Positions 45,301 to 64,000 of a DNA stretch of 64,000 bases are shown piece after piece. Each line of letters opens with the position of its first letter. Position 1 is the first letter of the stretch. Both the position numbers and the translations under genes were made by a program. The notes below the pieces were generated by a model, which did no database searches, had not been told where the DNA came from, and was given only the letters and a program-made list of their open reading frames with translations. This DNA is from Bugula neritina (lineage: Eukaryota > Animalia > Bryozoa): NCBI GenBank assembly GCA_964035545.1, contig OZ037772.1, forward strand, positions 4,840,233 to 4,904,232. Reading direction: 5' to 3'.

Positions 45301-48300
45301 CATACTTTACGGACCAATTGATCTGGAATCGAGGAGCTGTTTTATTGTACCCTTCCACTCTCCTGATTACCTAGAGAACACTCTCAGCACTGATCAAGAC
45401 GTCATTCTCCATGCTGAGATCATGTTCAAAGGTCTCTCAATCCCACAATATGTCTACCAACAAATGAGTGTTGTTGTTTTGAAGCTGTTCTCAGATGAGA
45501 CAAGTGCTCCCCTTGTTAAAAAAAATGGTGTAAAGGTTTTTCACGATGATGTCTCTGTGCGTCTTGTCTATGATGGCCTCTCAAGGAAGGCAGATGTTAC
45601 AGTGTCTGGAGCAGCAGAAAGAGTCACAGACTGTTGGGAGCACATGGTCAGCATAACCAGGAACATCTCCAATGAAATTCGCAGTTCATGGCCTGCCAGC
45701 AGAATGGTCCATAAGTCTAGTTGTACACACTGCATACTGAAAGGTGAATCAAGTCCTAAAGTTCAGGTAACTCCCAGCTGGTGTCATGACTTTCAAACTG
45801 AGAAAGCTTATGAGCAGTTCCAGAAGAAGATGGTGACAGTTATCTGCGGAGAAGATAAGATCCCAAGCCCATTCATGCACCCGTGTAAGTTGGTAATAAA
45901 ATAGTGCTGTGACTTGAAAACTGAAAATATCTAAATTTAGATATTATTATGTTGAATTTTCTTAGTTAGCTAAATGCATTTTAGTTTTCTAAATAAGTCA
46001 AGGTAACTAAAAGTATGCATATGTTTTATGAGCTTTGTCTATTTATAATAATAATAATTATAAAATTAGATGCAGCCACTATTTTTGTTAACAAGATAAG
46101 CATTATCCATCATTCACTAATAAAACTTGAGATTTAATTGTAGGTAAACCTTTGACTGAGTCTAACCTAAAGGAACTGAAGGCAATACTGAAAAAGTTAA
46201 AGATGCAGCAGAAGTATTGGAAGAAAGAGAAAGATGAATCAGGTATATTATACACTCAAGACTTGAGTGTTCTGCAGTTGTGTCTCCTTGAAGATCAAGA
46301 AAGGAAGTGTTGTGTTAAACAGACAGATAAAGTGTAATATGTTACAGAGACAAGCGAGCCCACACTCACTACATCTATAACTCCTCTCCTACGACCAGCA
46401 GTACAGCAGACTGTGACAGACGGAGAGAGTGACCTCTCTGATGATGATGACTACATGGAACCTGCTGATGACCTCGAGAGACAACTGGTATCTCTCAGAC
46501 AGGCAGTTCTACCAACTACTAGGAAGGACATTCGGAGATTATTCTACAACACAGATAAAGTGGGACATCACAATATCTTCTCAATAGTACTCTGGTTATC
46601 TTATATGGCTACGATTTTACACTAGCAACACACTATACATTAACTTTGACAAACAATATTCAGATATTCCAAGTTAAAGTTTTTATATAATTATGTTTTA
46701 ATAAAGGGAGTGGGATATATGTTTACGGAATCACATTAAGCACCATTTCTTTGTATAATAATGCCAAAACTATGCTACAGTAAATTCGTACCCAGGCCAT
46801 GTTCATTCAAAATCACGTAATATATTAGCTATTCCATAGTTTGAAACACAGTTTCTAATATATTATAAGCCAGTTTAACTAACTTAATACTTTCTATGTG
46901 TTTGTTTCATTTGAGTTTCACTTCAAGTTCTACAGAAACATTGCAATTATCAAAATATTTTACACAAACAACTAAATAGATCAAGTGTTTACGTAACTTA
47001 GATTTCATTTTTAATAACTGCAGGTGTTTTCAATGACAAAGAAACGAGGAAGAGCTCTGATAATCAACAACAGAGAGTTTCCCAATTGCCAGAAAAGACT
47101 TGGCTCTGATGTTGATGTCGGAAATCTAAAAGAAATGTTAGAAACATTTAAATTTACAACAGAAGTGCTTGAGAACATCAGTTCTGAGGTATTAAAGCTT
47201 ATGTATATAACAAAACAGTTTTTATGGGCAAAACTGTAGTGTTCCTGTCAACAGCTAGTACAAAAAGAATATTGGATAGATGCTTTTCATTCTAGCAGCC
47301 CTATATTTTTGCATACTTCTTTGATAATTAGCTTCATGTGACCCAATTCTACGATGCAGCAAGTTACATAAATTCACTGCATACTTGAAATGAGGGTAAA
47401 CTAAAAGTTCACTTTAGTTCCAACTTTCAGAGAGAATTAAATCTGTTGTAGGACGTGTTGCATGTGATAAAGAATGAGGTTGGAAACAGACATCATGCTG
47501 AGTCTGGAGTATTCTGGTTGGCTATTCTAAGTCATGGAACTAAGGCTAATCACATCTATGGCTCTGATGGTGTTCTGGTTAACCTAAAGGATGTGTATGA
47601 TCTTCTTTCACCAATTAACTTTCCTCTAATGGCTGAGAAGCCAAAAGTAGTCGTGATTCAAGCTTGTAGTGGAAGTGAGTATCACACAATATCAATAACT
47701 GCTTGCCTCTATAGCACCTTATTACTATAATAAGCTCATCTGAAGGCTTTTGACCAAATCATAAACGTGTAACTATATTCAGTACTGTTCATCTTCAATA
47801 CATTTGCTAGATAGAGTAGATGGAGGCGAGAAAGGAATCTTTCCAGCCAATCAGATTGATAATACAGTTACTGACCAACATTTGGTAGTCAAGGCTGTCA
47901 GATCAGCAGCAGGAGAACCTTTGGGAGGAGACAAATTAGAGAAACTCAACTGTGACAATCTGTTAATATTAAAGTCCAGCTTTGAATGTAAGTAAATAGC
48001 ATAATATTCCTTCTCTGAACATTACAAAACTATTTCTGCATATAACAATAAAAAACATAATTTATTTGTACTGTTTTCTAAAATAAGAATGAATCAGGTC
48101 TCTACCAGATTCAGGAAAATTAGAAAATGAAGATAAGATTTGAAAGTAGAAAAACAAAATAATATTATGGCTCTATGATATATTGACAGTCTCAAAAATA
48201 CTTTGTTTTTTAGTCACAAATTTAACTTACAGTCAAATATTAGCAACATAATAGTTTATGCTGAAAAGGCATTTGCCCTTCATTTCCGAATAAAATATTA

Positions 48301-48808
48301 TATTTTTAAGACTTCTATTGCAGCATTTGTGTCTAAACGTCACCCTGTTTACGGATCTCTAGCAATCAGATGTCTGGTTCAAACTATGTACAGACACGCA
48401 TGTCACAGAGATGTCTATGAAATATTTAGGATTGTAAGTATATATCCAAAAAAACAGCATGTGTGGATATTTAGTGCATATGTGAACATACATCTGATAA
48501 ATTTGATTACTTGCTTGGCTATTACCAATTCTTATAATTATCTGCAGGTACAGCACAGAGTGAGAAAATTTTGCATTCAGAGAAATCTTGAAAATGGTCA
48601 GACAGTGATTGCTATAGATACTCTGACACATCTGAGAAAGCTCTACCTGTTTCCTGGATACAATGGCTCTACAAGGAGTTCTGAGCAATCAAGTAACACG
48701 AGACAACAAGTAGAGAGAGAAGCAAAGTCAAGTAACACGAGACAACAAGTAGAGAGAAAATCAGACTCAAGTAACACAAGACAACAAGTAGAGAGAGAAA
48801 CAGAGTGA
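3359..48808 (+). CDS. Multi-exon gene encoding an LRR-array / ROC-COR (ROCO GTPase) / caspase fusion protein, about 1750 aa if all 13 intact LRR exons are used
   Basis: Proposed join: 3359-3380, 3530-3758, 13 x 141-nt LRR exons (starts 8125, 8871, 9850, 11596, 12628, 13559, 14464, 15391, 16326, 17230, 18141, 19079, 39785), 43963-45884, 46144-46242, 46348-46559, 47024-47188, 47452-47674, 47811-47987, 48324-48433, 48548-48808. All introns are GT-AG, phases match at every junction, total 5253 nt = 1751 codons. Motifs: LxxLxLxxN/C LRRs, PPYEVCIQG..AIRQY pre-ROC cap, DMGGQ, THKD, SHG, QACSG. Confidence 0.85.
3530..3758 (+). CDS. Coding exon 2: N-terminal cap and degenerate first LRR (..DNIHLLAPELRHLRVKNVKSVSNLS)
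   Basis: Acceptor ttacag|, open frame, donor GA|GTAAGT in phase 2, the phase required by the LRR exons (GA+C = Asp). Confidence 0.75.
4315..5069. mobile_element. MITE, copy 1 (same family as 42848-43608)
   Basis: TIR GGATAGTTAAGGGCA..TGCCCTTAACTATCCTGTG; interior highly similar to 42848-43608; left terminus slightly decayed. Confidence 0.85.
5174..7216 (+). mobile_element. Truncated, degenerate Ty3/Gypsy-like LTR retrotransposon (LTR, PBS, gag with CCHC knuckle, protease start)
   Basis: TGTAAC..ATAACA at 5174-5542; PBS TGGTGGCAGCGGTGAGAT at 5544-5561 (tRNA-Leu-type); frameshifted gag with CWDCGGHGHLHEEC; FLLDSKWTTNLLS protease-like motif. A decayed copy of the 5141-5470 region lies at about 7767-7945. 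Confidence 0.8.
7217..7750. repeat. Dispersed repeat of about 530 bp (second copy about 29892-30432)
   Basis: Both copies run from ctgaggcattttcaata..gtaacatagtgag to gagacaaaaact..gagctatccc with high similarity. Confidence 0.85.
8125..8265 (+). CDS. LRR cassette exon (MPNLKNLETLDMSSNKFSDGLPDVVTSMTSLKELIISFCELPNLPE)
   Basis: ctatag|C ... GAAAG|gttagt, 141 nt, phase 2-2. Confidence 0.9.
8871..9011 (+). CDS. LRR cassette exon (MSNLKNLETLDTSGNRFREGFPEVLASITSLRKLDMLYCALPTLPE)
   Basis: ctatag|C ... GAAAG|gttagt, 141 nt. Confidence 0.9.
9850..9990 (+). CDS. LRR cassette exon (MSNLKNLETLNMSENNFSEGLPDVFTSMTSLRELHMKNCKLETLPE)
   Basis: ctatag|C ... GAGAG|gttagt, 141 nt. Confidence 0.9.
10358..10803. 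mobile_element. PIF/Harbinger-type (Tourist-like) MITE, 446 bp
   Basis: taa|AGTTGCGTTTATACCT ... AGGTATAAATGCAACT|taa (TIR 15/16, TSD TAA). The empty site 'gcagactaaaactagcc' is present in sister introns (e.g. near 13130 and 15900). Confidence 0.88.
11211..11295 (+). pseudogene. Decayed LRR pseudo-exon (5' half and acceptor deleted; ..PDVV..LDINYCELPILPE remains)
   Basis: The intron repeat runs into 'atgcctcaaa tttagtaagg' without the tactatag|CATGTCT acceptor; the 3' end GAGAG|gtttgt is retained. Confidence 0.8.
11596..11736 (+). CDS. LRR cassette exon (MSNLKNLEFLDMSQNKFSDGVPDVFTSMTSLRELDMRSCALPTLPE)
   Basis: ctatag|C ... GAGAG|gtttgt, 141 nt. Confidence 0.88.
12628..12768 (+). CDS. LRR cassette exon (MSNLKNLETLDMSWNKFSDELPDVFTSMTSLRTLYMQNCELPTLHE)
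   Basis: caatag|C ... GAGAG|gttagt, 141 nt. Confidence 0.9.
13559..13699 (+). CDS. LRR cassette exon (MSNMENLETLDMSVNNFREGLPDVFTSMKSLRTLNMQNCKLTTLPE)
   Basis: ctatag|C ... GAGAG|gttagt, 141 nt. Confidence 0.9.
14464..14604 (+). CDS. LRR cassette exon (MSNLENLETLDMSGNNFSKGLPDVFASMTSLRELHMKSCELPTLPE)
   Basis: ctatag|C ... GAGAG|gttagt, 141 nt. Confidence 0.9.
15391..15531 (+). CDS. LRR cassette exon (MSNLKNLETLRMSGNKFSEGLPDVFTSMTSLRELNMRYCVLPTLPE)
   Basis: ctatag|C ... GAGAG|gttagt, 141 nt. Confidence 0.9.
16326..16466 (+). CDS. LRR cassette exon (MSNLKNLETLYMSQNKFSEGLPDVFTSMTSLTTLYMQICELPTLPE); absent from the ORF track
   Basis: ctatag|C ... GAGAG|gttagt, 141 nt, translated by hand. Confidence 0.9.
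17230..17370 (+). CDS. LRR cassette exon (MSNLENLETLDMSWNNFSEGLPNVFTSMTSLRELHMKSCELSTLPE); absent from the ORF track
   Basis: ctatag|C ... GAGAG|gtgagt, 141 nt, translated by hand. Confidence 0.9.
18141..18281 (+). CDS. LRR cassette exon (MSSLKNLETLIMSGNNLREGLSEVFTSMTSLRELHIENCKLPTLPE)
   Basis: ctatag|C ... GAGAG|gttagt, 141 nt. Confidence 0.9.
19079..19219 (+). CDS. LRR cassette exon (TSNLKKLETLNMTGNKFSKGLPEVFTLLTSLRTLYMQSCELSTLPE); absent from the ORF track
   Basis: ctatag|C ... GAGAG|gtgagt, 141 nt, translated by hand. Confidence 0.9.
22399..22754. mobile_element. Small AT-rich MITE-like element with CCCAG termini; related diverged copy at about 24425-24848
   Basis: CCCAGTTAG ... CTAACTGGG; the interior aligns by eye with 24480-24810, which is bounded by CCCAGATAGACCCT ... 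AGGGTCTATGTAGG. Confidence 0.5.
22983..26270 (-). mobile_element. Degenerate Academ-like DNA transposon nested in the 7-kb element
   Basis: cta|TAGTCTAGAAGTAACCT(T)CCAA ... TTGGAGGTTACTTCTAGACTA|cta (TAG..CTA termini, 3-bp TSD). Minus-strand relics at 23770-24390: ALTGFHALTGC (XPG-like), LPPTKDELNLHVKRANYQAAIWRR, CSCKTSC..RCGC..CTDVCQCKDC (Cys-rich finger). Confidence 0.82.
27014..27154 (+). pseudogene. LRR cassette exon with a mutated 5' splice site (near copy of exon 18141-18281), probably skipped
   Basis: Open 141-nt frame and intact acceptor, but the donor reads GAGAG|ATTAGT instead of GAGAG|GTTAGT. Confidence 0.75.
27958..30495. mobile_element. 2538-bp CACAG-ended non-autonomous DNA transposon inserted in the 5' LTR, 2-bp TSD (TG)
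   Basis: tg|CACAGTTGGTTTAAGGTCAT ... ATGACCTTAAACTAACTGTG|tg; the 3' LTR shows the empty site 'tgttgcatttaaatc'. Confidence 0.88.
31589..38638 (+). pseudogene. BEL/Pao gag-pol polyprotein, disrupted
   Basis: One reading frame after removing the 33243-33933 insertion and one TTAA, but with in-frame stops (about 34035, 34044, 34453, 36250, 36559, 36661) and a frameshift near 38375. Confidence 0.92.
33243..33933. mobile_element. piggyBac-type MITE (691 bp) inserted in BEL/Pao gag
   Basis: ttaa|CCCTTTCGCGATCAA ... TTGATCGCGTAAGGG|ttaa; excision restores the gag frame (YSYFLNQCLSASRQISGLEVLD). Confidence 0.92.
39785..39925 (+). CDS. Last LRR cassette exon (MSNLKNLEALHTRENNFSEGLPDVVTSMTSLRMLDMHICELPTLPE)
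   Basis: ctatag|C ... GAGAG|gttagt, 141 nt. Confidence 0.9.
40870..42830 (+). mobile_element. Degenerate, internally deleted RTE-like LINE
   Basis: APE endonuclease relics (GYTFYWSG, RILTMRLPL, LVITNTIFKHK), RT C-terminal relics (LLIAGDSAL, FKYL, LLHGAETW), (ATG)n tail at 42821-42830; the 5' boundary is approximate. Confidence 0.75.
42848..43608. mobile_element. MITE, copy 2, with CACAG termini and 2-bp TSD (TT); CMC/EnSpm-like
   Basis: tt|CACAGGATAGTTAAGGGCATCCT ... AGGTTGCCCTTAACTATCCTGTG|tt. Confidence 0.85.
43963..45884 (+). CDS. Large exon: terminal LRRs and cap, ROC GTPase domain and COR region
   Basis: Acceptor ttacag|T (phase 2), donor T|GTAAGT (phase 1). LTTPPYEVCIQGLSAIRQY, G1 VIGHTMAKKTSL, G2 ETT, G3 LIDMGGQPVY, G4 FTHKD, COR-like LPKLW..V and LTYMHDCGKVLWY. 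Confidence 0.92.
46144..46559 (+). CDS. Two linker exons (46144-46242; 46348-46559): basic helix followed by an acidic TDGESDLSDDDD stretch
   Basis: ttgtag|GT..CAG|gtatat (phase 1-1) and ttacag|AG..GATAAA|gtggga (phase 1-0). An alternative phase-0 donor exists after 46487, so the second exon end is less certain. Confidence 0.7.
47024..48808 (+). CDS. Caspase (peptidase C14A) domain exons of the fusion gene: 47024-47188, 47452-47674, 47811-47987, 48324-48433, 48548-48808
   Basis: RGRALIINN, RLGSDVD, ILSHG, KPKVVVIQACSG, SKRHPVYGS, TL..RKLYLFPG; canonical splice sites in matching phases. Confidence 0.92.
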
Positions 48809-49270
48809 AGTCACATGAGACAACAAGTAGAGAGAGAAGCAGAATCAAGTAACATGAGACAACAAGTAGAGAGAGAAGCAGAGTCAAGTAACACCAGACA
48901 AGTAGAGAGAGAAGCAGAATCAAGTAACACGAGACAACAAGTGGAGAGAGAAGCAGAATCAAGTAACACGAGACAACAAGTAGAGAGAGAAGCAGAGTCA
49001 AGTAACATGGGACAACAAGTAGAGAGAGAAGTAGAGTCAAGTAACATGAGACAACAAGTAAAGAGAGAATCAGAGTCAAGTAACATGACACAACAAGTGG
49101 AGAGAGAAGCAAAGTCAATTAACACAAGACAACAAGTAGAGAGAAAAGCAGAGTCAAGTAACACGAGACAACAAGTAGAGAGAATAGCAGAGTCAAGTAA
49201 CCCGAGACAACAAGTAGGGAGAGAAGCAGAATCAAGTAACATGAGACAACAAGTAGAGAGAGAAGCAGAG
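48689..49270 (+). repeat. 39-bp minisatellite, 15 copies, encoding SSN(T/M)RQQVEREAE; it straddles the stop codon
   Basis: Unit TCAAGTAACAYGAGACAACAAGTAGAGAGAGAAGCAGAR; copy 4 begins TGA instead of TCA (48806-48808); one copy lacks a CAA codon. Confidence 0.95.
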
Positions 49271-50095
49271 TCAAAAGTTAAACAGTAATCCAGAATAGAG
49301 TAGGGATAGCAAGCAAGCAAAATACCAAAAGTTTGAGCGATGTTAAATTTTACAGATTGAATTACATGCCTCAGTTAACTTCTTTACTCATCCAAGAACT
49401 TTGAGTGGTTACACGTCGTATTATTGTTATTGTTCCTTCTACTCTCTAAAGGTTGATTGAACTATTAGTCAACCTGAGTTTATTTCTAAAATTACGTGTA
49501 ATGTATTATATGTTACGTATTATTTAAATATTGTAATATTTTAATTTGGGCAACTCGATTTGGCGTTAATTTAAGATTTTACTTGACATAATCAGATGAC
49601 CTGGTTTGATGTTGCCCTCACTATTAACTGAAGAATAGAAGATGTTTGTTACACATCCTTATATAATGCTAAGCTTATATATATACATTAGTAGCAAATG
49701 TAATAATTTAACCATTATAGTTTACTGACATTTCATGCTATGCAATGACAATATTTACCATATTTTAAGCTAATAATATAATATTATTATGTGTGTAGTT
49801 CATCAACCTTAGTTTTACACTAATTCCAATGTACTTGTGATTACAATAAAGGCAATAATTATCATTAGTATGAAGACATTTTTAACTTTCAATTGGTTGA
49901 TCCCTATCATAAGCATGCAGCATAAATAAAATAGAAATTATGCCCTGACAAGATAACGGCCTAAATATTAAAAAAAAGTGAAACGGTATTTATGAAGTTG
50001 TGACAATATATAAAATGATCAATTTCTTCATTCTTGTGATGTGATTGGCCCATGGCATTCAATTATTGAAAACAGCTCCATGCACTTAAATAAAA

Positions 50096-50279
50096 GTGTG
50101 TGTGTGTGTGTGTGGTGAGTCTATGTGTGTGTGTGTGCCAGTTTGTGTGTGGTGTGTGTGGTTATGTGTGCATGTGTGCGAGTTTGTGTGCGTATGCGTT
50201 GGTGTGTGTGCGTACGTGCGTGTGTGTGTGTGTGTTCGTTCGTGCATGCTTTCGTGTGTGTGCGTGTGTGTGTGTGTGT
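50096..50279. repeat. Imperfect (TG)n microsatellite
   Basis: Directly visible. Confidence 0.95.
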
Positions 50280-50951
50280 ACATGAATTTGAATATGATGA
50301 CAATTTCATGAGATTGAGAGTGTTATGTATAGTACTAGTATAGCTGCAGTTCCTCTAAGTAGAATAGCATGTTTGTTGAGCTAGTGTTGGAAATGGATAC
50401 CAGATAAAGTGAAACTACCAGGATAAAAGCACATTAAGGCTCCAGCATTTTTTCACCTTTTATTTACTTTGAGAGTGAGACTTCAATATAGAATCTTTTT
50501 TATTAGAAAAGATTTTTATGCTCATAATGGCTTTCAACATCTGCTCACTCTTGCAGTTTGTATTAAATGGAATTATTAATATAATCATGTTAAACACTGG
50601 CAGTTATCTGCTCTGGCCAGAATGAAATGCAAGATAAGGTAACTTCTCTTTTACTGTTGAATTTCTAAAAAAATTTTAACAAGTATACAGCTGTAGTAGA
50701 CGTTGATTAGAGTTTTGATTATGTTTATTTTTTGACTTAAAGAAATCTTTGATGTTATATTGAGGTTACTCCTGTTGCTGGATATTGCTAGTTTAATATA
50801 AAGAACTAATACTACAAGCTGATGCTGTAGCTATTTGCAGACAAGCTGCTACCTATAATAACAGTAACTGCTTGTTTCAGTATGGACACAATAGAGGTGA
50901 CATGATGAACTAATTCTAACTATGGTCGAAACACATATGTATATTGAGATA

Positions 50952-52480
50952 CAGTGCTGTAAAAAGGTTTAAGGACGCCTCACTGTTTTTCATAATAGCA
51001 AAGTTCCAAGCTAATTTTTTAAGACATATCAAAAGCTTTTTCATAGGCATGATGCCTATCAAAACGTTCCTCAAAATCTCCTTATCGTATCTCATTTATA
51101 TAAATTATTAGTGTTTTTTTTATTTCCTTCCAAAAGTTGGGTAAAACAATGAGACATATATGGGAATTATTCAATGTTTTCACAATTTGTGTGTACTGTA
51201 AGACATCGGAATATTTTACTGGAAACATAGAAAAATATTATATGTGATGTGTTATACACATTATAGCAGCAATGCAACACACAGTGCTTTTAATTTTAGT
51301 ATCAATGTTTTGTTGGCCAGTCTTTACTTTCAATCACAAGTCGGCAGCGACGAGGCATTGACTCGTACAGATTCTCTAACTCGTTTTCACTCACCACATG
51401 ATGCCATGCATGAATTACAGGCTCTATGAGTGTCACCTTAGTTGTTGGCTTCTGTGAAGAAACTGTTTTAGCCATTCTTGACCATAAATTTTTGTAGGAC
51501 TTAAGTCCCGGCTGTGTGCTGGCCAGTTAAGTGTTGAGACCCTCTGCTTTTTCATCCACTCTTTAATAGTTTTTGCTTAATGGCATGGTGCATTGTCATT
51601 TTCAAATATGGTAATTTCGTTTAAAAAGAAGTTTTTTATGATTGGAAGAAATTTAGCATTGAGATTATCTATATATTTTTGAGCATTAACATCATTCCAG
51701 AGCAATTACTGAGTCGACTTACACCTTTTGATATTATACAACCCCAAAATATAACACCCATAGGGTGCCCAATTGTTCAAAAAATACATTAGGGGTTATA
51801 TTTCTTATACTGGTATCTTCTAACCAAACAGGTTCCAGAATGATTGTTTACATTAAATATGGATTCATCTGAAATAATCAATTTTTCTAAGCATTCACTG
51901 TCTAACTACCATGCTCCTTGGCCCACCGTAACCGGTTTTTTGCTACTTCTCTGTTAGTATAGGCTTCCTTCTTGCTTTGCAGCTACGTAGACCAAGGGTC
52001 AATAATCTTGGGATCTATCAGCAATCTTGGCTCAGCTATCTATAAGGATGTCTAAGCCGCTGTTCCTGTTGATTCTGAGAATTCTTTGCCAACTCAGAAC
52101 TTGTTTTATGACGATTATTTTTGCTGATCCTAATGAGAACCTTGTCATCTCTGGGTGTGCTTATTCTTGGTTGCCCACTTCCAGGTTGATCTGCTACACT
52201 GCCAACCTCCATAAACTTTTCGATAATTTGATGTACAGTTGTCTTTGCTTTGCCAACCTTTTCAGATATTTTCCCAATTGCATAACCTTCGTTATACAAG
52301 AAAGTTATTGCAAACCTTGCTTTTGAAGTAAGCTTAACAGCTCTCATTTTGTCTATGCGCAGCACCTAAGTGGACACCATGTAAACGCTTACAGCTAAAT
52401 AAGAAATTTTAAATTATGGACATGCACATATAAAATTTCACTGTTTGGCTAACTTTACTTAATTTAGTACACACTGAACA
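50952..52480 (-). mobile_element. Tc1/mariner transposase relic
   Basis: ORF 52036-52365 resembles the Tc1 paired-like HTH (SGQPRISTPRDDKVLIR); downstream minus-strand relics ISDES and DNAPCH; TA|CAGTG at 50950-50956; the opposite TIR was not found, so boundaries are approximate. Confidence 0.75.
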
Positions 52481-52676
52481 CCTCAGGTTTTCAGCTATTT
52501 CTTGGAGTTTAGCTACCCATACAAATAATTTTTTGCAATAAATCAATAAAATATTAACAAATGCAACTAATTATTCAAGTTTTTTTCAATATTGCTTCAT
52601 TTCTTGTGTTTTTTCTTTACTTTTTCAATAAAAAACCGGGATTTTAGTTACGTTTTTTATAACAATGTTTCAATAG

Positions 52677-53870
52677 TGTAGTAGCCAGTGAAGCATAAGT
52701 GCCACGTGCTCACAAACCAATCCTCATTAAGCACGTGATTTCCCCCCCCCCCACCCCGGCAAAGCAGAAAGGGTTCCGGCCAGTTTATATAATACAATTT
52801 AGTTAGAGCGTGAAGCTGATTGTACTAGGATAGGTGTTTTATATATGTGTACTACTCAAATTGTACTACTTTTACTTGTGTACTTGGTGTGTTAAATAAA
52901 TCTTCTTCTCTCTTAATTACTCGTTTAGTGCATAGCAATGCAACGTTGATAATTACAGTATACACGAATCCCCATACTTATTATAATTGTGAAAATTATA
53001 ACAGTGGTGGCAGCGGTGGAAACTCTATATACAAGCACGAATGCAACCTAACTGACGGCCACGACGAAGATGGCAAGAGAATCAGCTCGACAGAGAGAAG
53101 GTGAACCTGATATTAAAATAACCCCATAAGGTCCGATGTTACAAGGAGAGGAGGCTTATCGGTACCGATTGAAAGCTCCTACCTTTACCAAATTGGAAGA
53201 TGTGGAGCAGTTCATACAGGAAATCAGAGAGGTGATAGACCTTGCTCAATGGCCACCCAGAGTGGCCCTTATTCAGCTACGAAGAGCATTGAAGGAGCAG
53301 GCCAGGCCGTACGGACTAGGAACTAACATAGGCGGGATATTTGCTGCGCTGCGGGCTCGTTTTGATATCTTTGCAGTAGACGCCAGGGCCCGCCTGCAGA
53401 AGTTGTGCCGCACTCCGCGGACTTCGCTACAACAGCATGCAGCCACGGTGAAGAGACTGGCGCAGATTGCGTACGGCGACTTACCAGTACAACACCAAGA
53501 GCGCTATACCTATGATGCGTTTGTCCAGTCGGTAAAGACTTGGGTCTACACCATCAATTGCAAGCCAAAGTAGTGACCACGGTGGAGAACACCCTATGAC
53601 CCGGAGAGGCTTACCTACTAGCTACTCAACTACATAAGGGACAAGGAAACCCACCACCAGTTGGAATAAACGTCGCGGAAGGATACGCGGCATCGCTACC
53701 ACTCTCTCACATGACAGCGGCCCCGAAAGCCTCTTCCCTGGATGTGGAAGTGAATCGCATGGCGGGGATGTTAAAACAGTTGGTAGCGATTCTCGCTCAT
53801 ACCAATCCGATCCAACCACCGCAGAGGTCCCCGCAGTTGCCTCTGGCATATGCGACTGTCTCCTCATTCC
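52677..53870 (+). mobile_element. Truncated Gypsy-like element (LTR, PBS, gag), same family as 5174-7216
   Basis: TGTAG..ATAACA at 52677-53003; PBS TGGTGGCAGCGGTGG at 53005; gag QGEEAYRYRLKA..QIAYGDLP..QERYTYDAFVQS matches 5712-6250. Confidence 0.8.
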
Positions 53871-56800
53871 TACTAGGTAACTATTTTTATTTTATAATTT
53901 AAAATATTTCTAATATAAACTTAGTTTGATGTGCATTGTTACCAGTTTCTAATTTAAGATTTTGATTTAAGATAATCTTATTAAAATATATTATAATAAA
54001 CTATTACTTTTGTTTGCTTTAGCAGTTGGTTCATAATGCATTTAATCATTTATTTAAACCGCTTCTATTTATTTTACAGGAATGTCTCTAAATTACATGG
54101 GCAGGGCTGATGGAGTTTGTATATATATGTGTACTTATTGTATATAATAAATTGTATATGGTATGTATATAACTGCAAACAAGTTGCTTGTATTTTATTA
54201 GTTCAAAAATAAATGAGTGTTAGAAACCATTCTGATTTATTTTTTTGCAGTCGATTTATGAACTTATACAATTGAGCACTTTAATTTTAATACGGTATAA
54301 GCAGCGCTAAGTTCAGGCAAGCTGCTCTATCAGATGATGCATCAATTACTGAGCATCAGTTATAACAGAAAACTGTTTCCACATATATTTTTTTAAAAAA
54401 GTCACACCCACCAAGAGTAGAAGTAGTTTCCAAAAATAAAAAGTTTAACTTTAGGATAAAATATGTGCAATATAATAACGGCAGCTAAATTATTTTAAGA
54501 GGTAATGATGTCGCTACGACTGTTGACCCCTTTTAGCTAATCAACAAACATGACTTAAGTTTTAATGCTGAAATAACTATTAAAATGTTGTTTCAACAAA
54601 ATTTATTGTTAGGCCTGCTGATTTGAGATAAACTGCAATTTCGCTCATATGACGACGACGTTGCGCTTTACTGCTGCATAACCCCCTTTTAGCCTTTTTT
54701 GCTTTGCATATTCAGAATCAGCACATTTTCAGAAATTTTGAACATTCTTGAATTTTTGGTCATAAATTGCTGATGTGTACTTAAGTAAGTAAATTGAGCC
54801 ATGTAAGGATTTTAAAATTGCATGAATTTTGCTAACAAATATTACAGTAATTTTGTACTCAGCTGACACTATTTATATTTCAACTCTTTCAATTCCAGTT
54901 TTTACCTTTATAACTTGCATTGTCTTGAGAACAGCAATTGAGATTCCAAATTGAAACATTTTTCAGGCCAATAAGATGTGCGACTTAAAATACAATGATT
55001 CTCCATCTTATTATTTAATTATATACATCATGATGTAGTGCGAACCATTATAATAATCCTATAGTAGAAGAGAATCAATAAAAAATTGAAGATGTTTATG
55101 CGTTTCTAATAAAACAGGGCTGGGTAAGTTTTTGGCATGTTGCCCGATTTAACTTTGAGAAATAAATATTATTTGAAAAGAGCAGGCAAAATTTAATATA
55201 GGTATTTTAAAAACACAAACATGCACACACACATGCACGCACACGAGCACACACGCACACACCCGGCGAGCACATGCATGCATGCATGCAGGCACGCAAT
55301 AGTTATTATTATGACCTACTATATTATTTAATTTGATTAGTATCACTCACTATTTTAGTATAAATATGCAACTCAGTGGCTGACTTTAACCTTGTCTTTG
55401 TATCTTTAAAGAGTAACATGCTGATTGCACTGGAATGTGACAGCAAGAAGTCAAAAAGTGACCTCCTTAAAGAAGAAATAGCGAAAGAAGAAGATGCCAA
55501 AATAACTGCTGCTATAGACGCTGATCTTGCAGCAGCTACAGATGGTGAGCTAGCTGCTGTCACAGATGGTGAACTAGCTGCTGCTACAGATAATGTTGCT
55601 GCTGCCAACGAAACAGTCTTAAACGCTGAATCTGATTAGAAAATCGATTATTATTTGTATGAAGTATGACATTCTTTTTAAAAACATTTCAGAGGGAAAG
55701 CAAGTCATTACTCTTTCAGTATGCAATGCCAAACTATGTCTATTCACATTCTAAACAGAAATCATGGAAAACTGTTGAGAATCAAAACAAATTGGCGTTT
55801 TTCAATTTTCTTTCTAGTTTCCGACCTCAAACGTTCAACTCAACAGTCTCAAAATAAACTTATTGTCATTTCAATATTCACAAATTGACACTGCAGATCA
55901 AACTAAACATGTAAATGTCTCAGTCAAAACTTTATTTTATAGAATAAAATTATGAAGCAAAGTAAAATTTTTTACTCATTTTAGATTCAAAAGGAAACTC
56001 ATGACACCTTCTAGATACAATGAATTTGTGAACATAAAAAGACAAAATAAGAAAAAGTATACGCAAATAACTATTTAATTAAATGTAAGGTTTAACAACA
56101 AAACATAAGCAAATGCAATCAACTGCAGTGACTTCTGTATGTATGATTTGTACAAGCATAAAACCAAATTAAATAGTTGTTGAAGTGTCGAAAAGTAATT
56201 TCTTATTTTAAAATTATATTAATACTCATTTATATAATTTTGTTTCAAACCTGGTATTTATGTAACTAAAACAACATAGATAACAAACATAAACTTGAAA
56301 CATAATCAGGCGAGTGAAAGAAACTCACCAAATATGTCACTTTTTGACAATGCATACAATAGATGCCGTAAGGATCTGTTTAAGATTTGTGTTGAATAAA
56401 GTCTGGCTAAAACAATTGTGCATGATAAAAAAAATTTCTTGTAGGCAATTTTTTATTAAAGAAACTTCGATAATACCTTTTTGACTCATATTAGTGTAGA
56501 AACTGGTTCAATTGCACAGAACACAACTCCTATGCCCACACTTTATTCCATAATTGATATTTAATAATCAGTTAAAAAAGCAGCTAATATTTGAATAAAC
56601 TTAGTAAACTATCCAAATGAATCTTCAGTCACTGGAATAGTTATAATTCTCAATACAATACTTATAGGCAAATTTTTTTAGATTTCACAGTTTATACACA
56701 TGCTAAATTGTAAGATGATGCTCAAATAATATGAAATATATATATGAAAATGTATGTATAATAAATGTAAATCGACTGATTAAACATTTAAATTACAGCT

Positions 56801-59427
56801 TCTATTTGATATTGAATAGTTTTATACTTTTGTCATGTCATCAGCCTTTGTTATATATATAAATGACAAAGCTTTTATAGATATTGCAGATGTTGTAAAC
56901 TTACTCAAGTTTATTTGTCATTGAAGAAATAGCACCCACTGTATTTTATATAAAATGTTTTCGAAATTATACCAAGTCATCAAAGAGCATCATAGCAAAG
57001 GAAATCGGTCAGAATCACACTTAATTTATGTTAAGATGTAAATAAAAGACTACATCACATTTATTGATTGTAAAGAATGATAATGTTAGTGTTCTTCAAA
57101 TAAGTTGCCAGCATTTTTTTGTGATTAGAAAGTAGAATAAGAAAGAAAGACTGGGACTCTAATAATGGTGATTACTTTACAAATACAACAGGTTTGTCCG
57201 CTACTTCAGTGCATTTATCTTGTTTACAGGCAACGCTATGCGTAAAGGATATTATGTAAGTTTGAACTGTGGTGCATACTTGTCTGTAATCAGAGTCAGT
57301 GATTTGATGGCTGTGCTGCCACTTGTAAAACTGTAAACATTTTAGCTTTATTCAAGTTACTTAGAATTATTCCATTGCCTAAATCTACTTTTTTCACCAA
57401 GTAGAAATATTGTAATTCTATTGTTTTCTTTACATTAATCAGATGTTAGTGCATCCCTAATAGACATTATTCAACAATTGTGGAGCGCTTCTGGAGATGC
57501 TTACACTAGAACTAAGAATAGTTCAAGTAGAAAATATTTTGTTATTTATTGAACTTGAAAACTATTTTGGTTTAGAATACTTAAGTGGAGAAAATTTTTG
57601 AGGATACTTGTAAGTTGTCAGCTCTTGTAATAAATGTGTTTCATAGAACATTGCAACTAGGCAGTTAAATGCAAATAATGATACTCAAACTCGCATGCCA
57701 AGTTTTCCAATAATAACCAGTATTAGCAACTTAAATAATTATAAAATTAGCCAGGCTTCAACGCAGGGTTATTGAACCAATTTATTCTTCATAGCTTTAC
57801 TAAAACTCGTTGAAAACAAGATGATTTAGAAGTCTACTTTTTATCAGGGAAATGGGATTTATCTAATTACTATTTATGGCCTTCTTGTGAAAACGCAACG
57901 CATTATTAATTGTGACAGCATAAAAGCAATAAGTGAAAGCTGATATATTGGCCTTTGTAGCTAGGGCATTATAATGTAGTTGCCATAAATACAAATATCT
58001 ACCAGGAGTTATCATCCTTTGTAATAATCGTTATACGATCAACCAAATAAGCAATGACAGTGCAAGCATTTTGGCGAGTGGCTTTTAACGATACAATGCA
58101 ACTCCAAGAAATTTCAACTCTGTCAAATTGAACAATTAGGACTAAAATTTGTGTAGGTATAAATGCAACTCTGCATCATTCTGTTTGACATTTAACATCA
58201 TAATTATAATTGTCCACATCAGTTTTAGTAATAGTAAGAATTTATTTTACCCACTGATTTAAGCTAATGTCTTTCTTCTTTTGACATGTAATTTCAAACT
58301 ACACATTTTGTAAGTTTTGCTATCATCATCATTATGCTATCACCATCATTTTTCAAAAATAAATTAGTGCACTGCTTGGAAATTCTTTGATAAAGTTCAA
58401 ACAACTATTCAAACTTATTCTTCAAACAATTTTTCAAAAAATTCAGACATTTCTCCAACAAATCAGTGTAAATAACAACAGTTATAGAATATATTGATAG
58501 ACTCATTCAGGCTTGATTAAACCGGCACACTCTGATCATTTCATACATTATGATCATCATGCACTTGCACTATTACAGTTTATATGTTGAGCAACAGCAC
58601 AATGTAGTTGAACTATAATCAACACAGAGCTAGTTTCATTTTCTTTTGGTTCAGATGTGTAAAAGTTGTTTACACAACATAATAAAACATAAAATATGCG
58701 CGTGCAATTTTATAGTCATCATCCCTGTGAGAAACCCCTGAAGAAAAGAGTTTTTTTCGATGCAAACTAAGGACTTATTCAGATGAGACACAAATGAACC
58801 CTCGAATCCATAGCCTCATGTTTAAGCAAACAATCCAACCCTTAAACAATGGCTGCTCCTATAGTAATAAAACATAGATTTCACAAACAATTAAAAGGGA
58901 AGTAAAACATTTGTTATACCAATTTGTGCTACTTGCTTCATTATTTTGAAAAAATTTTTTAATCACATCGAAGTTATAAGAGTAAAATAGGTAAAAACTA
59001 CAATATTCACCCACATGCTTCATTGATGTAGCTTATTTAGATGTGATTAGTAAAAAAAGGATATTAATCTAGCATCAGTTATACCCAAAGACTGTTGCAG
59101 AAGTATCTGAAAAATAAAACCTTTGTATTTGTATAACATATTTCTAAGCATATAAATTTTGGCAAAGTTTCCAAATATAAATACTAATTGAAGCGTCATG
59201 TGTTTCAATATTTTGATCAGATTTCCAAACACTCATTAAAGTTCTTATAGATCAAATGAGTTTATATTATTCAATCAACTTGCATGGATGTCCATTTAAT
59301 TTTCATCCCTACTATGAGCTGCCTTTCTTATGTTACTTTGATATAAATACAAAAACACTGACATATTATGCATGTATAAAAGCTTGTTTGCAAACACAGT
59401 CGGGCACACACCTAGATACACCTGTAA

Positions 59428-59442
59428 ACAGAGACACATACA

Positions 59443-59483
<41 letters not shown>

Positions 59484-59546
59484 ACGCACACACACAAGCA
59501 CACACACACGCACATGCACACACACACACACACACACACATACACT

Positions 59547-59583
<37 letters not shown>

Positions 59584-59801
59584 ACACACACAAGCACACA
59601 CACACGCACATGCACACACACACACACACTTACACACACACACACACACCCACGCATACACACACACGCGCGCACACACCCACGCATACACACCCACACT
59701 TACATGCACACACGCATACACACACAGACACACACAGACACACACACAGACACACACACACACACACACACACATACACACACCAACGCACACACCCACA
59801 C
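59428..59801. repeat. Imperfect (CA)n microsatellite
   Basis: Directly visible. Confidence 0.95.
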
Positions 59802-61490
59802 CAAAATCAAGACTCAATTCACACTCACTTTGCACCTGGCACCCAGTATATGTACACCTACTTAAACATTTTTAGTAGTGTACAGAAATTGTGTAAAGAA
59901 TGTCATGATCCGAGCAAAGTCATGCTTAAAACTCTTACATGTAATCTTTTCATGATTGTCATTCATATAGAGATGGGCGTTTGCGGCATTCCCTCATAGT
60001 TCTAAGCTACATTAAAGATGTTTTTGGCAGTTATACAGAGCGGCCATATTGAATATGGCCAACACTCTTTGTCAAGGTGTGATAAGTTTTATTGATTGTC
60101 TCTCCCAAAATAAAACAGTATCTTATATTAAATGACTGCTCCTCTAACCTAACTACTTGTTCTTACACTTTATTCACTAAAAAATTTTGTTTTCACACCG
60201 TATACCTATCGAGCTTAGCTTCTATCATAATGAGGTTTCCTGATTGCAACTTCTGCTTTTGCTATACTCCCTTCATTGGACTATGCTGATTTCATCACAC
60301 TCAATTTTTTCAGCTCAATAAACAGTGCATTTATTTTTCTGCAATACTAATTATGTTGGCCAAAAGAAATATTCCCTTGTCATTTTAATTTATACATAAT
60401 TTTAATAATATAAAAATCTGAAAAGCAAAATTCATGCTTGAAAACGAATGTTTATGTATTCATCACGAACTAAGATTTATTAATCTACACCAGCTCAAAA
60501 ATGGTATGACTTCACTGCATTTTGATTCTTTCAAACATATCCATCCTCTGGTTTATTTTAAGACCACTTCTAAAATTGAAATGTATATTGCAATTTATTG
60601 GCAAACTCCTTCAAATTGTTTTTGAGAGCCCGAAGAAGTGAAACATTCAATTTGGCACAGATTATTGTCATAATGAGTGATGTACAAGTATGCACTGTTT
60701 TAATAGTTTGTATATTGCATGATGATTGCATACAAATGAAATTAATTTCATACACTAAACTAACTCTCTAGTGAGAGTTATGAGAGTTTATTGATGTTGA
60801 GCTCTATTTCTTATCCACTTGTTAATTGGCATTTATTCCTAGCAATATATTTCCACTAGCAAATTATCTGTAGATAAGTTAACATGAGTGAATTATCTGC
60901 AGTCCAAAATGCTCTGTAACAACATTTGGGTCTTGTTTGTTATACAAATAAATACATATTATCTTTTAAAAAAAATTATAAAAAATTCTTTTACAAGTCT
61001 TCAGGCTTATCATCATATTATTATTACAACTTACATTGTAAAACTTAAATTTGATTGATCTGGATACAGATTGGTGGTTATATTGAAAAAAACATGATCA
61101 TATAATTTAAATAAATGAGTTATGTCAAACAATTCAATAACAATGTTTATCAATTTTTAGACGTTTTAAATTTTTGATAAAACAGTGTATGTTATATCTG
61201 AGGTTCTTTATTTGCTAATTTTTCATTTTCTTAGCTGATAAGTACATTATCACTTGCTGCTTAGAGAAAGTTAACTGTTTCTTACAGAGTTATACAAAGC
61301 CTTCAAAATTACTAAAAAATACATTCGAAATCTTAATTTAAAAATATTTGTACTAGTTTTGTCTTATTATAATTATGAAAACATTTGTTATTAGTTTAGC
61401 TTCCTAATGTGCCTTTGTTATTCTTTATGGCTATATGTTCTGATTTTAGCATTATTAGGTAAAGTGCTGAACTTTTTTTATTCCCATCAG

Positions 61491-63312
61491 GTGTTTAGTA
61501 TGACAATGCCAAGAGGAACCGCTTTGATAATCAACAATAAGAAGATAACCAACTTCCCAGACAGAGAAGGTTCTGAAGTTGATGTTCAAAATCTGAGTGA
61601 CATGCTACAATCCTTTCATTTCAATATTGAGACGAAAACAAATCTCACAGCTGAGGTAACAGTTATGAAAAGTTTTGTTCTTTTCATTGCCTTATTTTCA
61701 GCTATATAATCACAAGTGTTGTTTTAAGCAAATCCCCTCAAATAATATAATCTAAGCTGAATGTAAATGTTCTTACTTTTACTGATTTACAAGTTTAAAG
61801 TTACACTTGCGATTTTCAGTTGCTTTGACGTACTTAAGTATTTGAATCATTTTACAAAAGCTCACAGCATTTACACAAATATGCTTATTATTTCCAATTT
61901 TTATTAAACATACAGGAAATATACCAGACGGTTAAAGCAGAAATTAACAACAGCAGAAATTCTGACCATGGAATGTTCTTCCTGTTTATTGGCTCTCACG
62001 GAGTTGAGAATCATGTCTATGGATCAAATGGAGAGTTGGTGAAACTGACAGACCTTTATGACTTGCTATCCGTGCCTCAGAATCCAGTGGTTGCTGATAA
62101 ACCTAAACTGGTTGTCATCCAAGCTTGCAACACGGGTGAGTTTTTTTCTAAATCGCATCTTACTGTAAGCCCAGGTAGTTCAGCATCAACAAAATTTTTT
62201 CCTAATCAAATGCAATGTATGAATAATTTAGATCTACCTAAATCTGAGAAAGCAGAGCACACTTATGCTGAGACTGCTACACGTTCAGTTTCTGCTGCTA
62301 GTACCAGAGACAGAAGTCTGCTAGAGAGACGCCATGGTGAAAATTTGTATGTTATGAAAGCTAGCTTTCTGTGTGAGTAAAAAAATCTCATTTTTGGTAT
62401 ACTATGCTCTCTGTATATTATATGTATGCTTTACAACTAAACATAAAGCTGTTCCGTCTGTGCTAACTTTTCCACAAATAACCAAAATATTGTGTTCCAG
62501 TTTATGTCAGTTTGTAGAGTAATATTCACATTATTGACTATATATAGCTATTCAAGTACTAAAAGTTCAGCTTTGTTGCATGTTATGTAGCTTATAGTGC
62601 CTGGAGATTTTCTGACTGTGGATCTCTTTTCATCAGATGCTTCGTCAGAACCATGTACCGACATGCCTGTCACAGAGACATGCATGAGATCTACAAAATT
62701 GTGAGTGTGCTACTTTTCATCTGATATAATATAATAACATATAGCTTCTTTCAAAACTTGTTAATGTATTCTGTGTCTCATCTCTTTTGTTTTCATAACG
62801 TGAAAGACCATAGTAATTAAGTGAAAATAACTCAGAAAGGAATAGAAACACTGATTATGTTGACTTCCTCATGCTGAATTTATTTCTAAATTATGTTTCA
62901 ACTTACATTTAAGTCTAAGTAATTTTTTTGGGGTGACATGTTGCATTATTTTATGTAGGTACAAAATTGGGTTAGAAAATTTTGTACAGAGAAAAGACTT
63001 CCTCTTGGACAACTACCAGTTGCTATAGACACTCTGACACACCATAGAAAACTCTACCTGTTTCCAGGATATGATGGAAGTTCTGGTCGAGAGAAGGAGC
63101 TGAGTTTACTTCAACTCAGAAAGATATGTCAACATCCTTCATCCAAGCCGCTTCTGTCCCGTCTAGCTGCACAGTCCACACTGTCAGAGTCAGCTAGCAC
63201 TTCACAGCAGGCAGAGAGTGGGCAAGGCAGCAAATCAAATATCCAGAAGAGAAAATTGGACTTCAGCAAGGATAGCATCCAAATTATAAAACACAAAAAA
63301 TTGAGTGAATAA
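61491..63312 (+). CDS. Second caspase module (paralog); exons 61491-61655, 61916-62135, 62232-62372, 62591-62700, 62959-63312; 5' end not identified
   Basis: PRGTALIINN, REGSEVD, IGSHG, KPKLVVIQACNT, SAWRFSDCGS, MYRHACHRD, RKLYLFPG. Intron positions and phases match the first module (165-nt and 110-nt exons are the same size); TAA at 63310-63312. Confidence 0.88.
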
Positions 63313-64000
63313 ATTTGGATGCAGGCTTTATAAAAATATTTGAGTATCTATATTGGCATGTCTTGGGTTTTTGTACAGCTCAAAACAAACACTAGATGTT
63401 GCTAAAACCATTGAGCATGGCTGACAAAAAGTGCTTGGAAAAAGTATTCAATATGATTCACACACATCACTATGTTTGCTAATATTTGTGTGAATTCACT
63501 GCAATTATAAGTAATGCCAGCAAGTTTCTTTTTTAAACTATATTATATTATTAACCAGTTTCATATTCTACTAACTTAAATAATTATATAGTGTCAGCTT
63601 TTAAAAAGGACTATCAGCTTAGTTAATGTTCCAAATTCATGAGATAATTTACCTTCCAAATATGTTATAAGGCTGCATATTCAGGACCAATATTTTTTTG
63701 TCTATATAATCTGTTAGAGTCATATTAAACTTTTTACCACTATGATAAGATGTTACGTGTTATTATTATCATTAGCTCCTAGCATACAATTGTTCTACTT
63801 GCTGTTATTTTGTATCCCTACCCTTTTACTTGATGTATGTTACTATTTGGACTCTATTATTAATTCTGTCTGTTTGAACTCTGATACTATTGTTTAGTGT
63901 GCTTTGCTATATAATTAAAAAATTCAAATTTTTTTTAAAACTTATATGCCTATTTCTTGTGAACAAAATATAATATTATGTGAAAAGTCACAGTTCAAGA

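Follow-up and report, generated by a model that had tools for sequence, protein, structure and literature searches.

How a caspase module with no visible sensor comes to lie behind a gene that already ends in a caspase of its own, and what such a module might do, is the question raised by a locus on chromosome 8 of Bugula neritina. The window, by which we mean the whole stretch of DNA that was analysed (64,000 nt; G000:C8:4840233-4904232), comes from a 216-Mb, AT-rich, intron-bearing animal genome. Throughout, B denotes the module at 61491-63312 and A the fused caspase at 47024-48808. The original prediction offered two readings of B, as either (a) an alternative effector end for the sensor of the upstream ROCO gene or (b) a prodomain-less caspase with a start of its own. 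The parts of the cassette, all on the plus strand, are these:

61264-61490, plus strand: putative remnant of the last intron of a lost parent gene; the acceptor at its end, tttttttattcccatcag, has a strong polypyrimidine tract
61491-61655, plus strand: caspase B exon 1 (E1), 165 nt, phase 0 to 0, opening with GTGTTT directly after the acceptor cag; ALIINN strand and RxGS motif conserved
61500-61502, plus strand: candidate start ATG within E1
61916-62135, plus strand: caspase B exon 2 (E2), ending in phase 1; GSHG carries the catalytic His and QACNT the catalytic Cys; RNA joints 61653>61914 and 62133>62231
62232-62372, plus strand: caspase B exon 3 (E3), phase 1 to 1, variable inter-subunit linker region
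62591-62700, plus strand: caspase B exon 4 (E4), 110 nt, phase 1 to 0, where the small subunit begins; contains the WR..GS motif; RNA joint 62700>62959 with GT..AG ends
62959-63312, plus strand: caspase B exon 5 (E5), end of the caspase fold and a Ser/Gln-rich tail; stop TAA at 63310-63312

As had been predicted, five exons with the boundaries of the fused caspase and a phase-0 acceptor are all present, and their phases are identical to those of A; E1 and E4 are also the same length in the two modules. All five exons are open, their AG/GT borders and eight internal splice sites are canonical without exception, and the resulting 990-nt open reading frame is intact, having no stops, frameshifts or lost splice sites. 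An AATAAA at 63308-63313 overlaps the stop codon. Intron 2 (62136-62231) is 96 nt long, stop-free and in frame, such that its retention would add 32 residues right after the active-site Cys; it is spliced out in RNA of a sister lineage, which we describe below. A frame is also open from ATG 61407 through the old intron (window 61407-61709), giving a 28-residue hydrophobic extension (MCLCYSLWLYVLILALLGK...); the same frame is closed by a TAG at the acceptor in the upstream paralogue, called up below, and its openness here is probably a matter of chance in T-rich sequence.

The module is recognizable as a caspase by several measures. When exons were scanned singly against Pfam PF00656 (cut-off 21.4 bits), E1 and E2 of both modules each scored above the cut-off, at 37-44 bits (39 bits for E1 and 37.2 bits for E2 of B), and E2 of B matched solved chains of caspase-2, CED-3 and caspase-1/3/8 in the PDB with E values of 1e-6 to 1e-3. 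The catalytic dyad, read directly in E2, is kept (His in GSHG, Cys in QAC), and paralogue alignment places Arg residues, candidates for binding the P1 Asp, in a DREGS motif in E1 and an AWRFS motif in E4. The canonical QACxG pentapeptide is not found in B, which has QACNT, without the usual Gly; A and the copy at C1:35238941 retain QACSG, the full-length sisters of B have QACSI, and expressed copies in the sister lineage have QACST. The B-type clade as a whole thus reads QAC(S/N)(T/I) rather than QACxG, and is nonetheless expressed in the sister lineage. At the protein level B and A are about 50% identical overall (53, 49, 31, 58 and 52% for E1 to E5).

The gene upstream of B has a 3' end of its own, comprising the following features:

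43919-45901, plus strand: LRR-ROC-COR exon of the upstream gene; its homology with the B-type paralogues ends at 45899-45912
46348-46559, plus strand: linker exon of the upstream gene, with its phase-0 donor at 46559; collinear with a paralogue on chromosome 1 (C1)
47024-48808, plus strand: caspase A, the native five-exon 3' end of the upstream ROCO gene (exons 47024-47188, 47452-47674, 47811-47987, 48324-48433 and 48548-48808); its stop, TGA 48806-48808, falls within an array of 39-nt repeats

Window positions 43607-52420 are collinear, at 82-84% identity, with C1:35334044-35354449 across the ROC-COR exon, linker exon, caspase A and 3' flank, and E2 of A is 95% identical to that of the C1:35334589 copy. 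Behind the C1 paralogue there is neither a B module nor a copy of the spacer repeat described below. The upstream gene (ROCO, linker, caspase A) is complete without B. We dropped the idea that B was the ancestral end of the window's ROCO gene and that A had been inserted ahead of it, since the C1 paralogue is collinear across 43.6-52.4 kb.

Several other features of the upstream gene were apparent. The tail of A runs into an array of ~15 copies of a 39-nt repeat (SSNTRQQVEREAE; window 48690-49290), in the third of which TGA 48806-48808 stops the protein where sister repeats read TCA; past it the same frame is open for 159 further codons, to 49285, and the TGA looks like a recent nonsense change that shortened the tail. 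Gag/pol-like open frames of 579, 598 and 585 aa (window 31586-38635, plus strand) lie between LRR exons of the gene in the same orientation, a retroelement-like fragment (41520-42187, plus strand) is likewise inside it, and a repeat of ~760 bp recurs in and around ROCO genes (window 4319-5070 and 42837-43609) at 88-93% identity.

A search of the genome gave at least 134 places with a match to caspase exon 2, as well as 113 candidate ROC-COR exons, of which 75 were scored. In paired cases the ROC-COR exon lies 1.2-3.7 kb ahead of the caspase, and in all six close paralogues it lies 1.2-1.7 kb ahead. The nearest ROC-COR exon to B ends 15.6 kb upstream (~16 kb) and belongs to the gene of A. The closest relatives of B are at C8:4,823,153 (79 kb upstream, hereafter up) and C8:5,042,360 (140 kb downstream, hereafter dn), with E2 sequences 94% identical to that of B. 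Both match window 43607-45900 at ~86% and then, ~630 bp further on, match window 61296-64000 at 83-90%. The ~630 bp contain a linker exon (...SDLSDDDEY...NTEK) whose donor is in phase 0, followed by ~200 nt of intron and a first caspase exon that begins VFGM.... From the layout of up and dn, a B-type caspase normally forms the 3' end of the ROCO gene to which it is fused. What is new here is that two full-length paralogues on the same chromosome carry a B-type caspase directly behind their ROC-COR and linker exons.

Up, dn and the A-type gene at C1:35334589 have one caspase module each; the gene at C1:35235875 has a second, broken one. Because the C1 paralogue of the upstream gene has neither B nor the spacer repeat behind it, comparison of these loci indicates that the two-caspase layout is not a conserved design. 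The original prediction was correct in its arithmetic when it noted that donor 46559 could join in frame to either 47024 or 61491, the donor and both acceptors being phase 0. However, linker donors and first caspase exons are in phase 0 throughout the family, so the match of 46559 with 61491 is inherited; the description of B as a module without a sensor stood, whereas the use of the frame fit as support for option (a) did not.

The stretch between A and B was described in the original prediction as lacking LRR, ROC or death-fold exons, and this held up. No ROCO-like coding similarity was found in 49.3-61.49 kb by tblastn with 169 plus-strand open segments drawn from 7-46.6 kb, and a Pfam scan of open reading frames in the same interval returned only a transposase-like HTH on the minus strand. 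The interval contains the tail of the 39-nt array, (CA)n tracts, the transposase-like HTH (minus strand), a gag-like open reading frame and a repeat that we call X:

58709-61263, no strand assigned: spacer repeat X, found only in the chromosome-8 array, where it follows every unit; it abuts the intron remnant ahead of B

There are two copies of X after up, one after dn, one before B and one after B (at window-equivalent 65551-67657). Because X is confined to the chromosome-8 array, we rejected the reading of X as a transposon. A 36-nt stretch at the head of X (58705-58741) is covered by RNA contigs at 40-60x in all four of the RNA runs aligned, with flanks that differ on both sides; this is a short motif common to many transcripts. 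As a candidate hammerhead or retrozyme the segment was rejected, since Rfam gave no match at either threshold.

The homology of B to its paralogues starts at 61278 (dn) or 61296 (up), that is, 15-33 nt into the paralogue intron and ~200-230 nt before E1. The linker exon is absent ahead of B, although up to ~10 nt of its end may survive, and B is likewise without the LRR and ROC-COR exons that lie 1.2-1.7 kb upstream in the same gene elsewhere. The promoter and 5' exons of the parent gene of B are lost, and neither a promoter nor a first exon could be identified for B. That homology starts inside the paralogue intron, directly after the end of X at 61263, argues that B is very probably a 5'-truncated copy, the 3' remnant of a full-length B-type ROCO-caspase gene. 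Either a tandem unit may have lost its ROCO half by deletion, or a caspase-plus-X segment may have been copied in a partial tandem duplication. Option (b) of the original prediction survives insofar as a prodomain-less start at ATG 61500 is possible, but the prediction had missed both the origin of the module by truncation and the full-length sisters that flank the window.

Evidence from RNA bears on how B-type modules are used. Six runs that we guessed to be RNA contained only 5-7% of the sampled words, and four of them were aligned to window 58001-64000. Spliced RNA contigs confirmed all four introns of the cassette (61655 to 61916, 62135 to 62232, 62372 to 62591 and 62700 to 62959) and used the acceptor of E1. 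The loose ends that these contigs carry before 61491 are ends of linker exons; they have no match at up to two mismatches in the assembled genome, and are identical to linker-exon ends of two JGI contigs (L058 and L060). From this combination of absence from the assembly and exact agreement with L058 and L060, we conclude that the runs derive from a diverged sister lineage. At diagnostic sites covered in E1-E3, the whole contig depth of the four runs, being from this diverged lineage, carries the non-B letter. Two pieces match B perfectly, one a contig of 73 nt (63052-63124) and the other a stretch of 39 nt (61489-61527), each of which spans only 1-4 diagnostic sites. The upstream partners that RNA shows at the acceptor of E1 are exclusively B-type linker exons from other genes, and B-type caspases are expressed as ROCO-linker-caspase chains in the sister lineage. 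In these runs from a diverged lineage, contigs that join 46559 to 61491 numbered zero, and because of that divergence neither option (a) nor option (b) is refuted.

Contigs L058-L066, from host-associated metagenomes (JGI 3300002729 and 3300003318), are bryozoan nuclear contigs with at least five copies of the B-type caspase. They are 81-91% identical to the assembly at B-type loci, and public RNA runs labelled as the same organism match them rather than the assembly. These comparisons suggest a cryptic sister lineage under one species name.

Cassettes that have lost their sensor half occur elsewhere in the family. At C1:35246384-35249448 (found as L006 and L016) a second B-like caspase lies behind a close paralogue, C1:35235875, which has its own caspase at C1:35238941; this orphan has no ROC-COR exon before it, carries an in-frame TAA in exon 1, and has an exon 5 of more than 590 residues of (ETASTSQQA)n that is still open at the end of the locus. 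In the sister lineage, the B-type caspase of L063 is preceded by array spacer and not by ROCO exons, the truncation falling 42 nt short of where the linker exon ends; its decay includes the loss of 12 nt across the acceptor of exon 2, a further deletion of 64 nt that removes the His region, and a Cys-to-Ser change. Since both orphans are broken, orphaning appears to recur in the ROCO-caspase family and usually to end in decay. A further B-like copy of the sister lineage, L062, has a ~760 bp repeat or transposon inserted 95 nt before exon 1 (L062:1-150), where the contig ends.

The history of B itself is mosaic. Up and dn agree with each other at 97%, and in its 5' half, which runs from the intron remnant through intron 3, B matches each of them at ~85%. 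Over the 3' half and flank of B, identity to up is 97-98%, and the copy of X that follows B shares 94% with the second of the two copies behind up. The identity of the 3' half to up indicates that sequence exchange with that full-length gene, 79 kb away, was recent. We then scored changes private to B by comparison with six B-type sequences (up, dn and four sister-lineage contigs), with codons counted exon by exon and split codons left out. In E1-E4, B has 10 nonsynonymous and 9 synonymous private changes, or 2.0% versus 6.7% per site, and private changes in its introns run at 6.6%, matching the synonymous rate. The corresponding dN/dS on the private branch is ~0.3, and the binomial P is 0.011, 0.029 or 0.084 for a neutral nonsynonymous share of 0.78, 0.75 or 0.70, respectively. 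Pairwise dN/dS is 0.23-0.38, in the same range as among full-length genes. Of 74 residues conserved in the family, 8 are changed in B, compared with 7 in dn and 6 in up, and relaxed constraint in B was rejected because there is no excess over the full-length sisters at these residues. The two deviations unique to B are YGSDG to YGSNG and QACS to QACN, and YGSNG also occurs in the sister-lineage contig L062, which has intron features in common with B as well. Taken together, the private counts, the pairwise ratios and the conserved-residue counts indicate that the B lineage was constrained through most of its private history, a signal that may predate the truncation.

If B is a working gene, its transcription would begin at a new site within the spacer or the intron remnant, and translation from ATG 61500 would yield a caspase of 326 residues with almost no prodomain and a Ser/Gln-rich tail. 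Having neither a sensor nor a recruitment domain, it could act through the protease fold alone. It might be an unattached partner of the neighbouring ROCO-caspases, whose caspase domains would pair with it or cleave it, in the role of either a downstream effector or a cFLIP-like modulator. That B is a functioning stand-alone, short-prodomain caspase starting at ATG 61500 falls, in our judgement, a little short of an even chance. In its favour are the intact 990-nt open reading frame, the eight good splice sites and the dN/dS of ~0.3; against it are the missing 5' part, the two decayed sister orphans, the QACNT pentapeptide without its Gly (a departure common to the expressed B-type clade) and, with little weight since the runs are from a diverged lineage, the lack of supporting RNA. 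The constraint signal may also weigh against it insofar as it dates from before the truncation, and since the 3' half is 97-98% like up, gene conversion could hold that half open without selection. The broader reading, in which the family sheds sensor-less cassettes and B has been selected as a partner (effector or cFLIP-like) or as a swappable second effector end, we regard as unlikely and put forward tentatively.

The same observations can be read as those of a young, silent relic that recently lost its promoter and sensor exons, is unexpressed, and has not yet acquired a disabling mutation, with conversion from up helping to keep it open. This is quite possible, if still improbable on balance. 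B is without upstream exons and ROCO sequence, the four diverged-lineage runs yielded no RNA contig specific to B, the other two orphan modules are broken, and the 3' half and flank have recently been homogenized with up (97-98%; 94% between the X copy after B and the second X after up). It fits less well with a private dN/dS of ~0.3 alongside a synonymous rate equal to the intron rate, and with a private branch that amounts to ~6.6% at neutral sites, given which chance survival of the 990-nt frame and its eight splice sites would need a truncation in about its last 1% (a rough estimate). Nor does the 5' half (E1-E3) amount to a recent conversion tract, being 85% identical to both paralogues.

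Two further explanations would leave B attached to a sensor. In one, transcripts of the upstream ROCO gene pass A and splice 46559 to 61491, so that the same sensor carries B and not A. The shared strand, the phase-0 donor and acceptor, the full acceptor with its strong polypyrimidine tract and the whole of the old intron, the constraint on the cassette, and the fact that the upstream gene already tolerates introns with multi-kb transposons all speak for such an arrangement. It would, however, need read-through of the terminal exon of A and of 12.7 kb of transposon- and microsatellite-rich spacer; the frame fit is inherited and not special, the A-type C1 paralogue and both B-type paralogues have one module each, and RNA partners at this acceptor are only B-type linker exons of other genes. 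We consider it improbable. The other explanation is that the sensor-less state is an assembly error or the property of one haplotype, and that a full-length ROCO-B allele exists in the species. Tandem arrays of 80-95% identical units are hard to assemble, and one 100-nt RNA contig has the nucleotide A found in B at 61497, joined to a B-type linker exon; yet that contig covers 39 nt of E1 and one diagnostic site, and comes from the diverged lineage. Moreover, the X ahead of B differs by ~15% from all other copies, as does the 5' half of B, which places the junction of X with the intron in unique sequence. We hold this to be the most improbable of the explanations considered here.

ROCO-caspase genes of Bugula neritina look like a large class of single-chain death or immune receptors that has gone undescribed, and a literature search returned no description of ROCO-caspase fusions in bryozoans. 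The locus displays how the array evolves, its units recombining unequally, undergoing mosaic gene conversion and losing the sensor half time and again, and amounts to a natural test of what a caspase end can do without its sensor. If B is expressed, it would be the first candidate for a free partner or effector of this receptor family and could serve as a way into biochemical reconstitution; if silent, it would be an ordinary by-product of tandem-array turnover, not to be annotated as a second effector of the neighbouring gene.

Among known systems, B is closest to the bryozoan LRR-ROC-COR-caspase genes, with which it shares caspase exons, phases, last intron and 3' flank (85-98% identity in DNA and 80-100% in protein per exon to the fused caspases at C8:4.82 Mb and C8:5.04 Mb), but it differs from them in being without the family's defining LRR, ROC-COR and linker exons. 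The short-prodomain caspases-3/6/7 resemble B in the caspase fold, in the His and Cys, and in having next to no N-terminal recruitment domain if B starts at M4; B is nevertheless no orthologue of these, appearing to have been born by truncation of a sensor-fused caspase, and has QACNT and a C-terminal Ser/Gln-rich tail of ~60 residues. Like cFLIP, B is a tandem paralogue beside sensor-linked caspases and could conceivably pair with their protease domains; unlike cFLIP, which keeps its DED domains and lost the catalytic Cys, B lost all recruitment parts and keeps the Cys. Finally, B is akin to the partial gene duplicates of tandem immune-gene arrays in having a breakpoint inside its parent gene and no promoter, in belonging to an array that is likewise recombining with mosaic gene conversion, and in having sister orphans that decayed, but it differs from them in carrying no disabling mutation and in a private-branch dN/dS of ~0.3.
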